Source: Phaeosaccion multiseriatum
Taxonomy: Eukaryota > Protista > Ochrophyta, other classes
Direction: 5' to 3'
Assembly: GCA_965112735.1 (NCBI GenBank)
Contig: OZ218952.1
Span: 2,542,001-2,606,000 of the forward strand
DNA: 64,000 nt
Shown here in pieces: positions 40,878-48,098 of this stretch (the stretch's first letter is position 1; every line of letters starts with the position of its first letter). The notes below the pieces were generated by a model that was not told where the DNA came from, did not search any database, and was given only the letters and a program-made list of their open reading frames with translations. Made by a program: the position numbers and the translations under genes.

Positions 40878-41947
40878 TGCAGCAGTTGGTGGTACAGAAC
40901 CATCTGGCGGCAGGGGCGGCGGTAGTAACAAGGGGATATGGAAGTTGTTCCTCCACCCTGGCGTCGCCTCTGCACTCGAAGCGGAGCGTGGTGGACTCCT
41001 TTGAACGCCTGCTGTGGGCCCAAGCGATTCGCATGTGCGTGTGTGCGCGTGAGTGTGGAGACTTTGAAGGCCGCTGATAGAAACATGGAAACTTTGAAGG
41101 CATGTGTGGTCGCTGTGTGCAAGCCCCTCCACGAGAAGCGGTGTCCCTGGAGTGAATAGAACGTGTGTTCTGTAACGCTCCGAAAGGAATCAGCACGGCC
41201 CAAGGACTCTCCAATGGCGGCGATCCGAGCATCTTACCGGGAAGGGGAGGTGTCCGTGGGACAACGGTCGTATAGGTCGAGAATGCTGTGAGAGGAGGGA
41301 GTCTGGAGATGCTGCTGTGGCTTCTCTCGAAGGAAGCGCGTGCTCCGTTTCACAAGCCGCGATGGGGAGGGAGCTTGTTCCAATGAATGGCAACATCTCT
41401 CGTGGTGGAGTACCTACCTGCTGAATCATCCTCGCACGACACCCTTCCTTGCTGGAAGAGAATGGAAGACCCAGGGGTGGTGGTGTGGGGGCTGGGGGGG
41501 GCCTCGCGGCGTTGGGGGGGTGCGCAAAGGTGCTAGAGAGAGCTCCTCCACGCCACTGCCCGCCACTTCTACTGTTGGGAAATGCGCGCCTCCTGAGCGG
41601 GGGGGAGGGGAATCCATCCCGCACAGCAGAGGGGAGGGAAGGGAGGGAAGGCGGAAAGTCGAGGATAGTCGGCATGCGGCACACAATGCCTCAAAATCAA
41701 GCGCTTCTGCGCTTATGTTCTTTAGTGTACGTTACAGAAACACAAGGTCTGTACAATCTCTCCCTCCCTCCCTAGGTGAGCACCACGACACTCGAGTCAC
41801 AGTCGAGTCGGTTCGAGCACGCCTCTGCCAACGACCCTCTCTCTGCCGTGGCTGGTGCACCCCCCTGGGTCTTCGTAGAGCTGTGATAATGTAACAATTA
41901 AGTCAGCGCAACGCGTTCAATGGCGTTGGCGTTTCAGACACATTCTG

Positions 41948-42107
41948 AATCAAATCGCATCAGTTTCATCAGTTTGCCTGAATCAGATCGCATCAGTTTC
42001 ATCAGTTTGCCTGAATCAGATCGCATCAGTTTCATCAGTTTCATCAGTTTGCCTGAATCAGATCGCATCAGCTTCATCACTTTGCAGTTTCATCAGTTTG
42101 CCTGCTT
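41948..42107. repeat. 33-bp tandem repeat gaatcagatcgcatcagtttcatcagtttgcct (about 4 copies) at the stop codon/3' UTR of the minus-strand gene
   Basis: Read directly from sequence. Confidence 0.9.
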
Positions 42108-45100
42108 CTTGAGGTGCCTGAGGGGTACAAAGGGGAAGTGGGGGGAGGGAAGACGGGAGGGTTGGAGCCGCTGGCCAGCGCATTGTCGAGGTGCGACGAA
42201 AGTCCGCCCAAAGGCATCCATCCATCCATCCATCCACTGCCATCCATCCATCCATCCATCCATCCATCGAGGCCCATCCGTCCTTGGCGCCTCACCGGAA
42301 TCTCTGGAGCCAAGGCTGGATTTCGAACATGCCCTTCCTCAGCTTCGACTCAAGCACCTGTACACCAAACAACAACCACAACGCACAAAGAGGAGGAGGG
42401 GGGAAGGAGGAGGTTGCAGGGGGGACACGTGCGGGTGAGAATCAGCTGTCGTAAAGGACGGGCTGGCCGAGCTGTGTGTCTGCCCGCGCGCGTGCGTGTG
42501 TGTGTGCACGTGTGTGTGTGCGTGTGTGTGTGTGTTGTGTGTGTGTGTGTGTGTTGTGTGTGTGTGTTTATGCTGGTGCTCTCCTCACCACCCACTCGCA
42601 CGCCCGGGTTTGCTCCTCACCTTGCTGGGCAGATTTCGAAGCAAAGTCTCGCGAAGACGGACGCCGAGAGGGTGCCTGTGGCACATACACACACAACACA
42701 CACACGCACGCACGCACACACACGCGCGCGCACACGCGCACACACACACACACGCACACACACACACACACGCACACAGAGAGAGAGACACACAGGAGGG
42801 AGTGACGGGAGGCGGCAGGAAGTCGGGTCAGGTGCGGTGTGGTGTGGTCTCATGTGGGGTGGTGTGGTCTGATGTGGGGTGGTGTGGTGTGGTGTGGTGT
42901 GGTGTGGTGTGGTGTAGTGGTGTCTCAGCCACGCACGCACCGGAGCTGTCCGAGCTTCATCTGCTTGTAGCTCTCGTTGTAGATGAGCGTAGTGTGCCTC
43001 CGCCGGGCCCTCTCGTACAGGTAGAAGGCCTCGATGTGTCCGTCCGGCTCTGACCAATACTCGCGAAGCAGCACAGAGAGAACGAGAGCGTCTTCGATGG
43101 CCATGCATGCGCCCTGAAAGGAGCAAGGGGGGGGGGGGGGTAGGGTCGGTTTGTTGGCTTGGTGGGAGGGAGGGAGGGTTGGTTGGTGGGTAGACCATCG
43201 AGGGAAGATGGAAATGGGGCACATATCGTCATATGCTCTCTCTCTCCTGTCATACCCTCCTGCGAGGACGGAGGGGGGAAGGGCCTTCAAAGCACTGGGC
43301 TAAAACACACTTGCTCGCTCACTTACTCACCTGGCCGTTGTTGGGCGTCACTGCGTGGCACGCGTCCCCAACAAGGGTCACATGGCTGGAGCTCCACCGC
43401 GGCAGAGGAGGGCGGTCGTGAATGGCGTGACGGTACAGATGGGCACCCCCCGGGGAGTCCGAGTGTGCTTGCTGCAGCGCCATAGACTGCTTGCGGCCGC
43501 AAGAAAGAAGGAGATACAGAGGGTTGAGAGGAGTGGATGGCAGTGGATGGAGGGAATAGATGAGGCAGTGGGAAGGAGGGCACGGGTGGGGGCAGGCAAA
43601 GGAGCACACAGAAACATTATGGGTGGGGGAAGGAAGGAAGAAAGGAAGGAATGAATGAATGAAAGAACGGAGCGAAGGAAGGAAAGAAGGAACGAAGGAA
43701 GGACGGAATGACCTTCTTCTTACTCTTCATTCCTTCTCTGCTCTTCTTGGCATAGTAATTGTACCTTCACCGGCTCTGGCCAGCGCTGAGCCGCTCCCTC
43801 CAGCTCGCTCCGAAGCTCCTCCGAAGTACTGCGCTTCTTCTCCTCCCTCTCCCCCTGCTGCTTGACAAACCAAAAGGCCTGGCTCTTCTTGCCGTTAAGC
43901 ACTCCCCAGCTGAAGCGAATGCCGTCCCCGTAAGTCACCGACATGCTTCGCGGTCTTGTTTCCTCCTGAAAGAAAGGCACAGCAAATTGGCGAAAGCAGC
44001 GCAGTGAGTGTCCCAGACAGGTACACCGGGTCAGGTAAGAAAAGGAGAAGGGGTTGTCAAGAAAAAGAGGTCAGACGAAGCACTGCTGCAACAAGTAGTC
44101 ACCTTCCCCATATCTCTTCTCCCTTCCCTTCCCTCCCCTTCCCTCCCCTTCCCTCCCCTTCCCTCCCCTCCCCTCCCCTCCTCTCCCCTCCTCTCCCCTT
44201 CCCTCCCGTCCCCTCCCCTTCCCTCCCGTCCCCTCCCCTTCCCTCCCGTCCCCTCTCCTCTCCTCCCCTCCCCTCCCCTCCCCTCCCCCTCCCCTCCCCC
44301 TCCCCTCCCCTCCCCCTCCCCTCCCCTCCCCTCCCCTCCCCTCCCCCTCCCCTCCCCTCTCTCTCCGATTCCATCCAACTCAATCCGGCCCCTTACCCGC
44401 TTGGTAATCGACGCCAAAATGCCGTCTGCCGCCCCCGCCCCCTCCCCGCTGCGGGCTACAGAGGCCGCTGGGCCAAGGTCCACAAGTCCTCGATAGCACA
44501 CCTCGCCACCGTAGCGCTTGGGCGGCTCCTTGCCTTCCGTGACGTGCCTTCGCATCAGAGAGTTGATACCTGAGGAGGAGGAGGAGGAGGAGGAGGAGGA
44601 GGAGGAGGAGGAGGAGGAGGAGGAGGAGGAGGAGGATGAGCACAGGTGAACAAGGAGAGGCCAAGAGCAAGCAGCACCCACACCACCCGCCAAGGCACCA
44701 TTCCTTGGTTGGATACAATACCAGATCCTTGTTGGTTGGGTTGTGCCCCACACAACGGGCACATTCACCGCACACTACCCCACACCGCCATCAACAAATC
44801 GCCCCTTCTTCGGTCTGTTTCTTACCGTCACACCCAACAACGACGCGGCCAGACACGAGAAGTGCTGCCTCTTTGCTGCTGCTGCTGCTGCTGATGCTGC
44901 TGCTGCTGTTACCACTGCTGCAACAGAGCACCTCTGCCGTCCCTGCCTCGACCCTCTCCTGCACCTCAAGTGCCCTCACGCCGGTGCGCACGTTGAGACT
45001 GGCGTCGGCTCTGCGCATGGCTGCCATGAGCGCTGCCCTCCCGATGAGCACGAAGGCCTCTCCGGAGCCCTCCACCACTCCCTTCATGTTCACAGTCCGC

Positions 45101-45618
45101 AGCACCTCATCCTCCTCCGCTGACCTGTCGAAGTGGGTATGTGGGTGGGTGAGTGAGTGGGTGGGTAGGTGCGTGAGTGGGTGCGTGCGTACGTGCGTGC
45201 GTGAGGTCGACGCTCCAAAAGCAATATGACAGGGCGAGCAGGTCAAAGGAACCTCTCTCTCTTCTTTTCGTACACTCCTCCTGCTCTCTCTCCACTCCTG
45301 CCATGGCCAGTTTCAGTTTCAGCATCAGCTTCGGCCGAGACATCCACCCTCACTACTGCTACACCACAGAGGCAACTTTCTCACATACATACAGGAAGGG
45401 AGAGAGAGAGGGAGAGAGAGAGAGGCAAATACTCTGATACACGATCCGCCAAGATACCACGGCCTCCCCTCCGCCTCACAGGCCCTGACTCTCACTCAAC
45501 TCAGTCACCGCACTCACTCTCACTCACTCCCTCACTCACTCACTTCGCCTTTGTCATGTACACAGTGTCCACTGCATAGGCCTGCTCAGCCCAAAAACGC
45601 TTTTGCTGCTCCTCCTCC

Positions 45619-45654
<36 letters not shown>

Positions 45655-47953
45655 CCATCACCCCCCCCCACATGCTCCCTCGCCTGCCCCGCTGGGTCCT
45701 TCCCTCTGCCCACCCCCAGCTCCTTGAGTGTCTGAATGGCGGCGGGCCACAGGGCCAGGTCCGCTCCTTCGTCTGTGGCCTCGTTGCCCCCTGCCCCTGC
45801 CCTATGCGATGCCCCGCCTGCTGCTCGCGTCTCCAACACTTCGTACGGGATACCGAGTTGCTGTGGAGGGGAAGGAAGGGGAGAGGATGGGAGGAGAGTG
45901 GAGGGGAGGGGAGGAGAGGGGAGGGGGGGGAGAGGAGAGGGGAGGGGAGGGGAGGGAAAAGAAGGAAAGGACAACAGCGGGGCCAAGACGAACATGTTAG
46001 ATTCCCAGACGCGGGAGTACACACACATGCACACAGAGACACAGAGGCACACACGTCGAGCCCTAAAGTTGCGGCAACCCAACAGAACAGACAAGACGCT
46101 ACCCACAAGAGGCACCTGGACTCTCCAACTTCTTCCTATGCTCTCTTTCTCTTCTCTCTCTCTCTGTCTCATTCTCTTCTCTTCTCTCTCTCTCTCTGTA
46201 TCTTCTCTTGTCCCTCTCTCTCTCTCTTCTGCCTCCTCTCTCTGCATGGAACCCGAAAGGACGCGCCGCCTGCTCTCATCTTACCTTCAAGCAGAGGGCA
46301 AGGGTGAGACCGCCGACGCCGCCACCAACAACAACAACTCGGTTCTCCTCCTTTCTTGAGGACCCCTGTCCGGCGTCCCGCCCTGCCGTATAACCAACTG
46401 CAGCTGCTGCTGGTGGGGGCCCGCCCTTCTTCTTGGGAGAGAAGAACTGCACCAAGAAAGGGACGAGAGGTAAGCAGCGCAGCCCCAGAGAAGACACCTT
46501 CCTCAAACCCGGGGTCTCCGGTGCTAGAGCAAACTGCAGAATCTTTCGTTGTGGGGAAAATCATATCAGAAGAAGCACGGAAAAGGGAGGGCAGGGCGAG
46601 GGAGGGCGTGTTGAGAGGGCTAGTATGGTCGGTACCTTCCTGCAACCCCAACCCGGCAACCCCCACTGGCTTACATGCTGGCGCGCACAGAAGCGCAATA
46701 CACCTTTTTTGTCATGGTTACTTTTAGGCAAGCATAGATGGCACATCTAGGTGAAATATCGAACTTTCTCTCACCTCTCTGGCCAAGCTTTCTCCAAACA
46801 CGCCTAGCACGACGAATGGCGAGTGCTTCAGACACTGAAGCACCAATCCATCCACTCGATACCCCTCCCTTCCCCGCACACTTGTCGCTGCCGGACGTTG
46901 AGAGCACAAGACGTTTCGAGCTATGCTCGCCGCTGCGGGGGCGGAGCAAAGCACCGCTGCCATTGTCCAGCCACTGCACCAGCCACACAGATAGATGACC
47001 ACGGCACTCACGTAGGCCGCTGCGTTGAAGCTCGCCACTAGCAGTGCTGTCGTCTCGTCTCCCAGGAGCACGGGCAGGGTGTACTTACCCCCCGCCCAGT
47101 CTGCCCGCCGATCTGCCAGGTTGAGTACGAGGAACAGGCTCGCCTTGAGGAGGGCGGCGGGCACCACGAGGATGGCCAAGCGCAGCACTAGCAGCCCCGA
47201 CGATGGGGACGAGAAGGAGAAGGCCGCGCTTTGGACGAGGGCAGAGAAGAGGGGCAGGAGGACGTTCATGACGAGAGCCGCCGCCGCCTCGCCCAGGCCA
47301 TTGTGGTTGAGCTGGAAGGGGGGCGCACTGTATTGGTGGGAGATGGCCACCATCGACACGCCCAGCCATAAGCAACGCTTCATAGAGGAGTAGATAACAA
47401 CGCAGGGAGAGAGAGAGATGTCCAGCTCGTCATTGTTTTGGTTGGGAACACATAAAATAGCAAACTGACTCACCGATGGGAGCAAGAAGCGGAGGCACAG
47501 CATGGCAACCAGGAGGCAGATCCTTCCGTAGGATAGGCATGCCTTCTCACTGATGAGGCCGTTGACGAGCACCTTGCTTCCTCCCGTGAAGGGCCCGCCA
47601 TGCACATTGAGTTTGTCCGACGGGAGATCGTGTAGCTCCCCGTAGAAGTGTGCCGTGAGCTGGCAGGAGAGCACGAACAAGTAACCGCAGCAAAACAGCC
47701 AAGGGCTGAACACTGACACCGCCGCCTTCGCTTCAAAGCTGAGTGGGCCTCCCTCCCCCCCCTGCTGCTGCTGCTCGTGCTGCTGCTCGTCGAGTAAGCG
47801 GAGCGCGAAGGTGACTCCCGTGGCGTACGTAACGGCACTGAACACGGTCATCTTGAGCCGGGCGAGGCGCATCACCAGCTGCGGGAGAGACGGGGGCTGA
47901 GAGGTAGCACCCGGGCTGGGGCCATCCCCATCTGTTCGCCCTGACGGAGGCAT
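42093..47953 (-). CDS. UbiA-superfamily (MenA/UBIAD1-like) prenyltransferase fused by splicing to an FAD-dependent (group A) monooxygenase
   Basis: Prenyltransferase: [54 protein letters not shown] and many TM helices. Monooxygenase: [19 protein letters not shown]|[18 protein letters not shown]|[10 protein letters not shown] phase-0 donor after 46775 joins a phase-0 acceptor at 46542 or 46533, and the monooxygenase exon has no in-frame ATG. Confidence 0.78.
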
Positions 47954-48098
47954 TTTCTTTTGTTTTGGGGGCACAGATTGGATCCAGATTGATTCGGATT
48001 CGAGGATGGCAGTTCACGGCATTGTTGACTTACTTTCTCCCGCTGTCCCGCGGCTCGCTAAGACAGAAAGACAGAGCGAAACAACAACCGCTCTCCAT

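Follow-up and report, generated by a model that had tools for sequence, protein, structure and literature searches.

Two enzyme domains lie next to each other on the reverse strand of a 64,000-nucleotide (nt) stretch of contig OZ218952.1 of Phaeosaccion multiseriatum (assembly GCA_965112735.1, positions 2,542,001 to 2,606,000), hereafter the window. The first is a UbiA prenyltransferase in an open reading frame (ORF), and the second is a class A flavin-dependent monooxygenase (FMO) divided over a series of exons. The question raised by this locus is whether the two domains belong to one gene, and what a protein of this kind would make. An earlier note on the window had claimed that the prenyltransferase is spliced in frame to the monooxygenase and had treated the fusion as something unusual or new. 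In this study, the locus is read, with high confidence, as one nuclear gene, intact and rich in introns, from an ochrophyte-like eukaryote. Its three-part product consists of a UbiA prenyltransferase, a hydrophobic helix with a spacer, and a class A FMO, and is an orthologue of an uncharacterised eukaryotic fusion family. Sequence comparison establishes how the gene is built, that both domains are intact and that the fusion is conserved. The novelty of the fusion did not hold, given that the architecture is widespread and has already been deposited.

Structure of the gene and evidence for the fusion

The window is GC-rich (~58%) eukaryotic DNA, with short introns rich in microsatellites. The UbiA ORF occupies 46724-47974 on the reverse strand and has its first ATG at 47953. 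Splice sites were positioned from homolog alignments, and the downstream exons were located by tblastn with homologs, which placed the FMO exon series on the same strand down to the stop codon at 42294-42292. The resulting model comprises 11 exons separated by GT-AG introns throughout, and encodes a product of 907-929 amino acids (aa) in which the sole stop is the terminal one. Acceptors are CAG at 9 of the 10 introns, and donors are mainly GTGAG or GTAAG. The feature in the earlier note extended to 42093, whereas the coding sequence ends at 42292. Its identification of the UbiA ORF stood, with a match above the Pfam cut-off, but the ORF contains an in-frame intron of 96 nt (47378-47473) that had been overlooked.

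Full-length proteins with the UbiA+FAD_binding_3 architecture were matched to the window model by BLASTP in single end-to-end alignments, with 42% identity over 998 columns for Nemacystus (E = 0) and 43% identity over 908 columns for Choristocarpus. A single high-scoring segment pair spanned residues 25-916 of the model, which is collinear with ~20 two-domain homologs. Of the 101 alignment columns without variation among 14 full-length homologs, the model retains 99, and these columns are spread across both domains. Such retention is far above chance and indicates that both halves are under selection.

The connection between the domains is itself conserved. A linker motif, LRCLP(L/I)(V/Y)P(F/Y), ends the UbiA part in every relative, including ORFs that stop immediately afterwards. 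In the window, the linker motif and the flavin-binding motif GGGVGG share one exon, which has an in-frame TGA upstream and no in-frame ATG, both as previously described; this exon therefore cannot start a protein. The fusion is encoded by one uninterrupted ORF in three relatives, namely, P0021 (2364 nt), P0026 (2469 nt) and P0025 (2505 nt), the last of which shares a clade with the window protein. The transcriptome set filed under Diaphanoeca grandis contains a complete two-domain ORF of 802 aa, and in Tribonema gayanum, UbiA is connected with the linker or with FMO exons in Trinity isoforms. The predicted in-frame splicing of UbiA to a group A FMO, the central claim of the earlier note, is thus supported by the collinear homologs, the position of the linker in the Rossmann exon and the single-ORF relatives.

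The fusion junction lies at intron 2, where several splice sites are available (slashes mark the exon boundaries). The candidate donors are GAG/GTGAGA (last exon base 46775) and GAT/GTGCCA (46745), and the candidate acceptors are AAAG/ATT (first exon base 46542), CTGCAG/TTT (46533) and GGAAG/GTG (46497). All five sites are in phase 0 and in the same frame, and each of the five combinations tried yields the fusion. The phase-0 donor after 46775 and the phase-0 acceptor about 230 nt further on that had been proposed before were both found, giving an intron of 232 nt, and other in-frame sites fit as well or better. The splice consensus of the gene itself prefers 46775 with 46533. A profile of 15 homologs prefers 46745 with 46497 (914.5 vs 908.5-909.6 bits, the consensus pair scoring 908.5), because the read-through peptide SSIFHL then resembles SLFHL/SIFGH of relatives and the spacing is free of gaps. 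The difference in bits is small, and both forms may exist. Reading through intron 2 gives a closed ORF of 416 aa that stops at 46724-46726, 16 codons past the 46775 donor, with the ending VPSMLA that had been predicted for intron retention. An in-frame intron and a read-through stop can accordingly conceal a fusion, which is a lesson for annotation.

The coordinates of the gene are collected in Table 1. The flavin motifs GxGxxG, DG and GD, earlier reported as intact, were all recovered at the positions given there. The 55-nt micro-exon is a feature that was absent from the earlier note.

Table 1. Exons, introns and intron repeats of the UbiA-FMO gene (positions in the window)
Feature	Position	Strand	Content
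Exon 1	47474-47953	-	ATG 47953; N-terminal UbiA helices; GELHDLPSD 47615-47641; family signature TGGSKVL
Intron 1	47378-47473	-	96 nt, in frame, stop-free; TCG/GTGAGT ... TGAAG/CGT; gap in every homolog
Exon 2	46775-47377	-	Remainder of UbiA domain; NLADRRAD 47099-47122; end at 46775 (GAG/GTGAGA) or 46745 (GAT/GTGCCA)
Intron 2 (fusion junction)	46534-46774	-	241 nt; consensus-best GAG/GTGAGA ... CTGCAG/TTT
Intron 2, alternatives	46543-46774 (acceptor of the earlier note, 232 nt) or 46498-46744	-	Read-through stop 46724-46726
Exon 3	46285-46533	-	Linker motif LRCLPLVPF; low-complexity spacer; FAD Rossmann motif GGGVGG 46309-46326; no in-frame ATG
Exon 4	45544-45860	-	FMO segment with acidic Asp/Glu-rich insertion
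Exon 5	44826-45124	-	FMO segment, end GCD-G; phase-1 intron 5 splits the DG motif
Exon 6	44397-44569	-	FMO segment, invariant GEVCYRG
Exon 7	43765-43965	-	FMO segment SMSVTYGD ... WFVKQ ... WPEP
Exon 8	43331-43471	-	FMO segment with GD motif (GDACH); G6 run at ~43446
Exon 9	42941-43113	-	FMO segment GACMAIEDA ... KQMKLGQL
Exon 10	42621-42675	-	55-nt micro-exon; matches C-terminal helix of homologs
Exon 11	42292-42357	-	C-terminal tail; stop 42292-42294
Intron microsatellites	42492-42919, 43628-43708, 44121-44359, 44572-44640, 45865-45956, 46141-46243

Repeats are frequent in and around the gene. Microsatellites occur in almost all introns, including (GT)n, (CA)n, GGTGT, GGAA, CCCTC x47, (GAG)23, GGAGG and (CT)n. 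A (CATC)13 array lies at 42215-42268, and a 33/42-bp tandem repeat at 41945-42083 is found ~200 nt downstream of the stop codon.

The two catalytic domains and their family

Against the Pfam UbiA model (PF01040), the N-terminal part scored 48.1 bits (cut-off 34.2; E = 1.2e-12). Its first Asp-rich motif is ELHDLPSD, that is, ExxDxxxD (G105-E106-x-x-D109-x-x-x-D113), and its second is N246-x-x-D249-x-x-x-D253 (NxxDxxxD). The first motif had been described as atypical, which is right insofar as Gly replaces the leading Asn, but its spacing is normal and the Gly is invariant in 14 aligned eukaryotic relatives. The bacterial members of the same UbiA subfamily start this motif with NE or ND. Further signatures of the subfamily are TGGS[KR]VL and QYSxPP...N-H-x-x-x-G-E. 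Hydrophobic segments run throughout the first 390 residues of the window model, and the UbiA part is taken as a polytopic, all-helical membrane fold with a putative number of spans and a putative topology.

The best NCBIfam models for this part were those of MenA, and both scored below their cut-offs (NF004749, 53.8 vs 277 bits; TIGR00751, 26.8 vs 102.15). The only relative with a solved structure was UBIAD1 (8DJK, E = 6e-4), and that alignment covers the second Asp-rich motif. By these comparisons, the UbiA part is a distinct subfamily that is distantly related to MenA/UBIAD1. True orthology to MenA or to COQ2/COQ6 was set aside as the cut-offs were missed. Bacterial members of the subfamily, recognised by N[ED]xxDxxxD...TGGS[KR]VLV, carry other N-terminal domains. 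P0050 and P0051, from Joint Genome Institute metagenomes, have an O-methyltransferase, and P0052/P0054 (metagenome-assembled genome of Pseudomonadota, L008 3816-5348) have a NAD(P)H:quinone reductase of the Flavodoxin_2/FMN_red type.

The C-terminal part is a soluble class A FAD (flavin adenine dinucleotide) monooxygenase with the p-hydroxybenzoate hydroxylase (PHBH) fold (PF01494). Single FMO exons of the window gave weak Pfam matches only, and the fingerprints are all kept, with G429/G431/G434 in GxGxxG, D647-G648 in DG and G807-D808 in GD. The FMO profile built from homologs matched NicC (6-hydroxynicotinate 3-monooxygenase) at 1.5e-40. Matches were also obtained to tropone monooxygenase, HpxO, decarboxylative vanillate and 4-hydroxybenzoate (4-HB) 1-hydroxylases, 3HB6H, salicylate hydroxylase and VibMO1. 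The homolog FMO nevertheless scored far below every NCBIfam equivalog cut-off, and P0025 was below those of the UbiH/UbiF/COQ6 models (TIGR01988, 62.9 vs 224.65; TIGR01989, 44.8 vs 489.3). A pairing after archaeal lipid synthesis, with digeranylgeranylglyceryl phosphate (DGGGP) synthase and geranylgeranyl reductase, was set aside since the FMO matches hydroxylases far better than the reductase (1e-40 vs 3.8e-13).

The AlphaFold model of the homolog P0025 had a predicted local distance difference test score (pLDDT) of 79.8 and a predicted template modelling score (pTM) of 0.80. It is predicted to be all-helical from residue 24 to 359, where it forms a helical bundle; helices also cover the linker motif, and a disordered spacer (364-397) precedes the FMO fold. 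This fold matched HpxO in Foldseek with a TM-score by target of 0.82-0.83. The FMO domain of the window protein also contains an in-frame poly-Asp/Glu insertion (~11 Asp, then Glu/Gln) between KELGVG and FW, encoded on the reverse strand at 45600-45700 in exon 4. Acidic insertions at the same site are shorter in the brown-algal orthologues.

The UbiA+FMO architecture has been deposited from a wide range of organisms. It is found in Ectocarpus siliculosus (CBJ28407.1/D7FH29, named 'Flavoprotein Monooxygenase'), several other Ectocarpus species, Scytosiphon, Nemacystus and Choristocarpus, and also in Phaeothamnion, Tribonema minus (KAG5181541.1) and Chrysoparadoxa. Further fusions are those of Planoprotostelium fungivorum (PROFUN_10845), Plasmodiophora brassicae, several metagenomic eukaryotes and three Blastocladiomycota, namely, Blastocladiella (H9P43_000928), Catenaria and Paraphysoderma. 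The window gene adds a member to this deposited and functionally unexplored family, and the architecture is not new. In the literature library searched, we found no paper on the UbiA-FMO architecture or on the Ectocarpus accessions, and no member with a published function. The fusion is not a one-off, and represents a conserved two-domain enzyme family that spans distant eukaryotic lineages and is without published function. The relatives from Ectocarpus and Blastocladiella, or an intronless relative such as P0025, provide ready material for expression and assay.

Sequences grouped roughly by organism in the maximum-likelihood tree, and the window protein was placed in a stramenopile clade with brown algae, Phaeothamnion and Tribonema (support 100/99). 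Several entries require care. The sequence filed under the choanoflagellate D. grandis (P0046, EukProt EP00040) nests within the ochrophyte clade on a long branch, and may represent contamination instead of a holozoan gene. The T. minus protein (P0047, KAG5181541.1, 1072 aa) repeats short segments (the second Asp-rich region, LGVFADCL and PKRNK) and looks like an artefact of annotation or assembly. P0013, P0014 and P0015 (586-602 aa) diverge as a branch of their own, with an FMO half that is some 200 aa shorter and no recognisable GD motif. These three are either ORFs truncated by introns or proteins with a degenerate monooxygenase domain.

Proposed product and alternative explanations

A UbiA prenyltransferase followed by a class A FMO that acts on prenyl-4-hydroxybenzoic acid has a precedent in separate enzymes, in which VibMO1 performs the decarboxylative hydroxylation of UbiA-made prenyl-4-hydroxybenzoate (PMC10257657, PMC11574748). 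For the fused protein, the two Asp-rich motifs of the UbiA domain would bind Mg2+ and a prenyl diphosphate and ionise the latter, and the domain would then alkylate a phenolic or quinol acid within the membrane. The extra hydrophobic helix (LRCLPLVPF) after the canonical bundle plausibly brings the chain back to the cytosolic face, and the flexible, disordered spacer might let the FMO reach the lipid product. The tethered FMO would use NAD(P)H and O2 to hydroxylate the prenylated ring, and the carboxylate might be lost in this step, as in the action of VibMO1 on prenyl-4-hydroxybenzoate. Substrates, reaction order, membrane topology and product are all putative in this scheme, as is the unknown prenylated aromatic that the earlier note had proposed.

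A prenyl-hydroquinone or quinone is the product that we favour by analogy, at a little short of an even chance. The preference arises because the FMO relatives hydroxylate phenolic acids, often with decarboxylation, and because bacterial fusions join the UbiA subfamily to quinone reductases and O-methyltransferases. Both are typical quinone-tailoring partners and hint at quinone-type chemistry. A bolder proposal, possible and yet doubtful, is that the family makes a lipid of the prenylated hydroquinone or quinone type that is unrecognised so far and differs from ubiquinone, plastoquinone and phylloquinone. One polypeptide would then act as a channelled synthase for prenylation and decarboxylative ring hydroxylation. 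If this were true, the lipid would be common to a patchy set of eukaryotes, including PX-clade algae, Blastocladiomycota, Plasmodiophora and a protosteloid amoeba. Fusions of this kind mark consecutive steps of a pathway and, together with the bacterial fusions, this one points to an uncharted prenyl-quinone route.

Several observations weigh against the fused gene and its proposed activity. The exact junction is ambiguous, as the hidden Markov model and the splice consensus disagree. Splicing across 46775-46497 is predicted from sequence; the search of RNA runs by 31-mers, with read placement, returned only low-complexity matches of 30-36 nt in metatranscriptomes, which are spurious because the introns contain microsatellites. 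At 43446, one G is missing from a short-read contig of the source DNA, and the model would be frameshifted in exon 8 if that contig is true. In the first Asp-rich motif, Gly takes the place of the leading Asn. Homology does not allow a substrate to be assigned, since the UbiA part is far below the MenA cut-offs and the FMO of the homologs is far below every equivalog cut-off. The bacterial gene neighbourhoods of P0016 (nearest UbiA relative), P0053 (FMO relative) and P0054 (quinone reductase-UbiA) revealed no informative operon.

The alternative that survives best keeps the fusion and makes intron 2 a regulated one, whose retention would give a stand-alone prenyltransferase beside the bifunctional protein and hence two enzymes from one locus. 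The early stop past the 46775 donor would permit this, as would the two donors and three acceptors that are all in frame, and the orthologue of T. gayanum has several isoforms, among which P0055 ends shortly past the linker motif. We consider such regulation unlikely. The Trinity isoforms may be unprocessed pre-mRNA, the retained-intron product would be without the conserved LRCLPLVPF helix, and the case is built on isoforms of relatives rather than on reads of this organism.

A second alternative concerns the reaction. The FMO could be a prenyl-chain epoxidase of the PaxM/Trt8 type of fungal meroterpenoid synthesis, and the product an epoxy-prenyl aromatic ready for cyclisation. The best matches in sequence and fold are instead phenolic-acid hydroxylases (NicC, HpxO, 3HB6H, vanillate/4-HB 1-hydroxylases, salicylate hydroxylase and VibMO1), and no terpene cyclase partner was seen, which makes epoxidation distinctly unlikely even though the PDB matches include the indole-epoxidising CtdE and PhqK. 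In the ESM Atlas, the clusters nearest by language-model features are ascomycete FAD_binding_3 proteins, ~30% of which also have a squalene-epoxidase domain, but their scores of 0.83 are below the level that is meaningful for this tool. The same feature search returned generic FAD_binding_3 clusters only, and no large cluster of fusions.

It is very improbable that the locus is a recently inactivated pseudogene, in which the true run in exon 8 is five G and the frame is broken upstream of the GD motif. The suggestion derives from a contig (record 25, depth 46.5) of run X7, which is genomic DNA because its contigs span introns. This contig has one base fewer at 43446 and at 43273, and both sites are G6 runs (43445-43450 in exon 8 and 43271-43278 in intron 8). 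The window sequence, by contrast, keeps all 11 exons in frame and 99 of the 101 invariant residues, among them the ones encoded downstream of 43446. Both differences come from one assembled contig, and no phase-compatible alternative splice for the five-G version was found by inspection. The G-run differences could be assembly error, contig error or allelic variation, and the window sequence was taken as correct.

Least probable of all are two adjacent, separate genes, that is, a stand-alone prenyltransferase ending in VPSMLA at 46724 and an independent monooxygenase transcript with a missed first exon: the closed 416-aa ORF, the UbiA-only database entries of 325-365 aa and the low-complexity RNA matches, which do not exclude separate transcripts, would allow them, but the GGGVGG exon has a TGA upstream and no in-frame ATG and opens with the linker, which in all relatives is part of the UbiA half, the UbiA-only P0005, P0007 and P0008 stop just past that linker as expected for ORFs entering an intron, three relatives carry the fusion in a single ORF, and all five junctions tried are in frame. 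One fused gene thus remains the preferred reading of the locus.

Comparison with known systems

The closest counterparts of the window protein are the fusions of the Ectocarpus D7FH29 type, which share with it the domain order, the linker, both Asp-rich motifs and the FMO motifs at 32-43% full-length identity. Differences are confined to lineage-specific low-complexity insertions and intron positions. The relation to MenA/UBIAD1 is more distant: these supply the best NCBIfam matches and the sole solved structure, and their second Asp-rich motif aligns as NxxDxxxD. The fusion family differs from them in having Gly for Asn in the first motif, the additional signatures TGGSKVL and QYSxPP and the fused FMO, and it is present in non-photosynthetic protists and fungi.

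The FMO has the fold and all the FAD/NAD(P)H fingerprint motifs in common with NicC, HpxO, 3HB6H, the vanillate and 4-HB 1-hydroxylases and VibMO1. Identity to enzymes of this type is ~20%, and the known ones are soluble and stand-alone, whereas here the FMO is tethered to a prenyltransferase. The pairs COQ2+COQ6 and UbiA+UbiH/UbiF resemble the fusion in their logic, in which prenylation of a ring is followed by its flavin-dependent hydroxylation. In those pairs, however, the two enzymes are separate proteins, and the UbiA part of the window protein is MenA-like and not COQ2-like.

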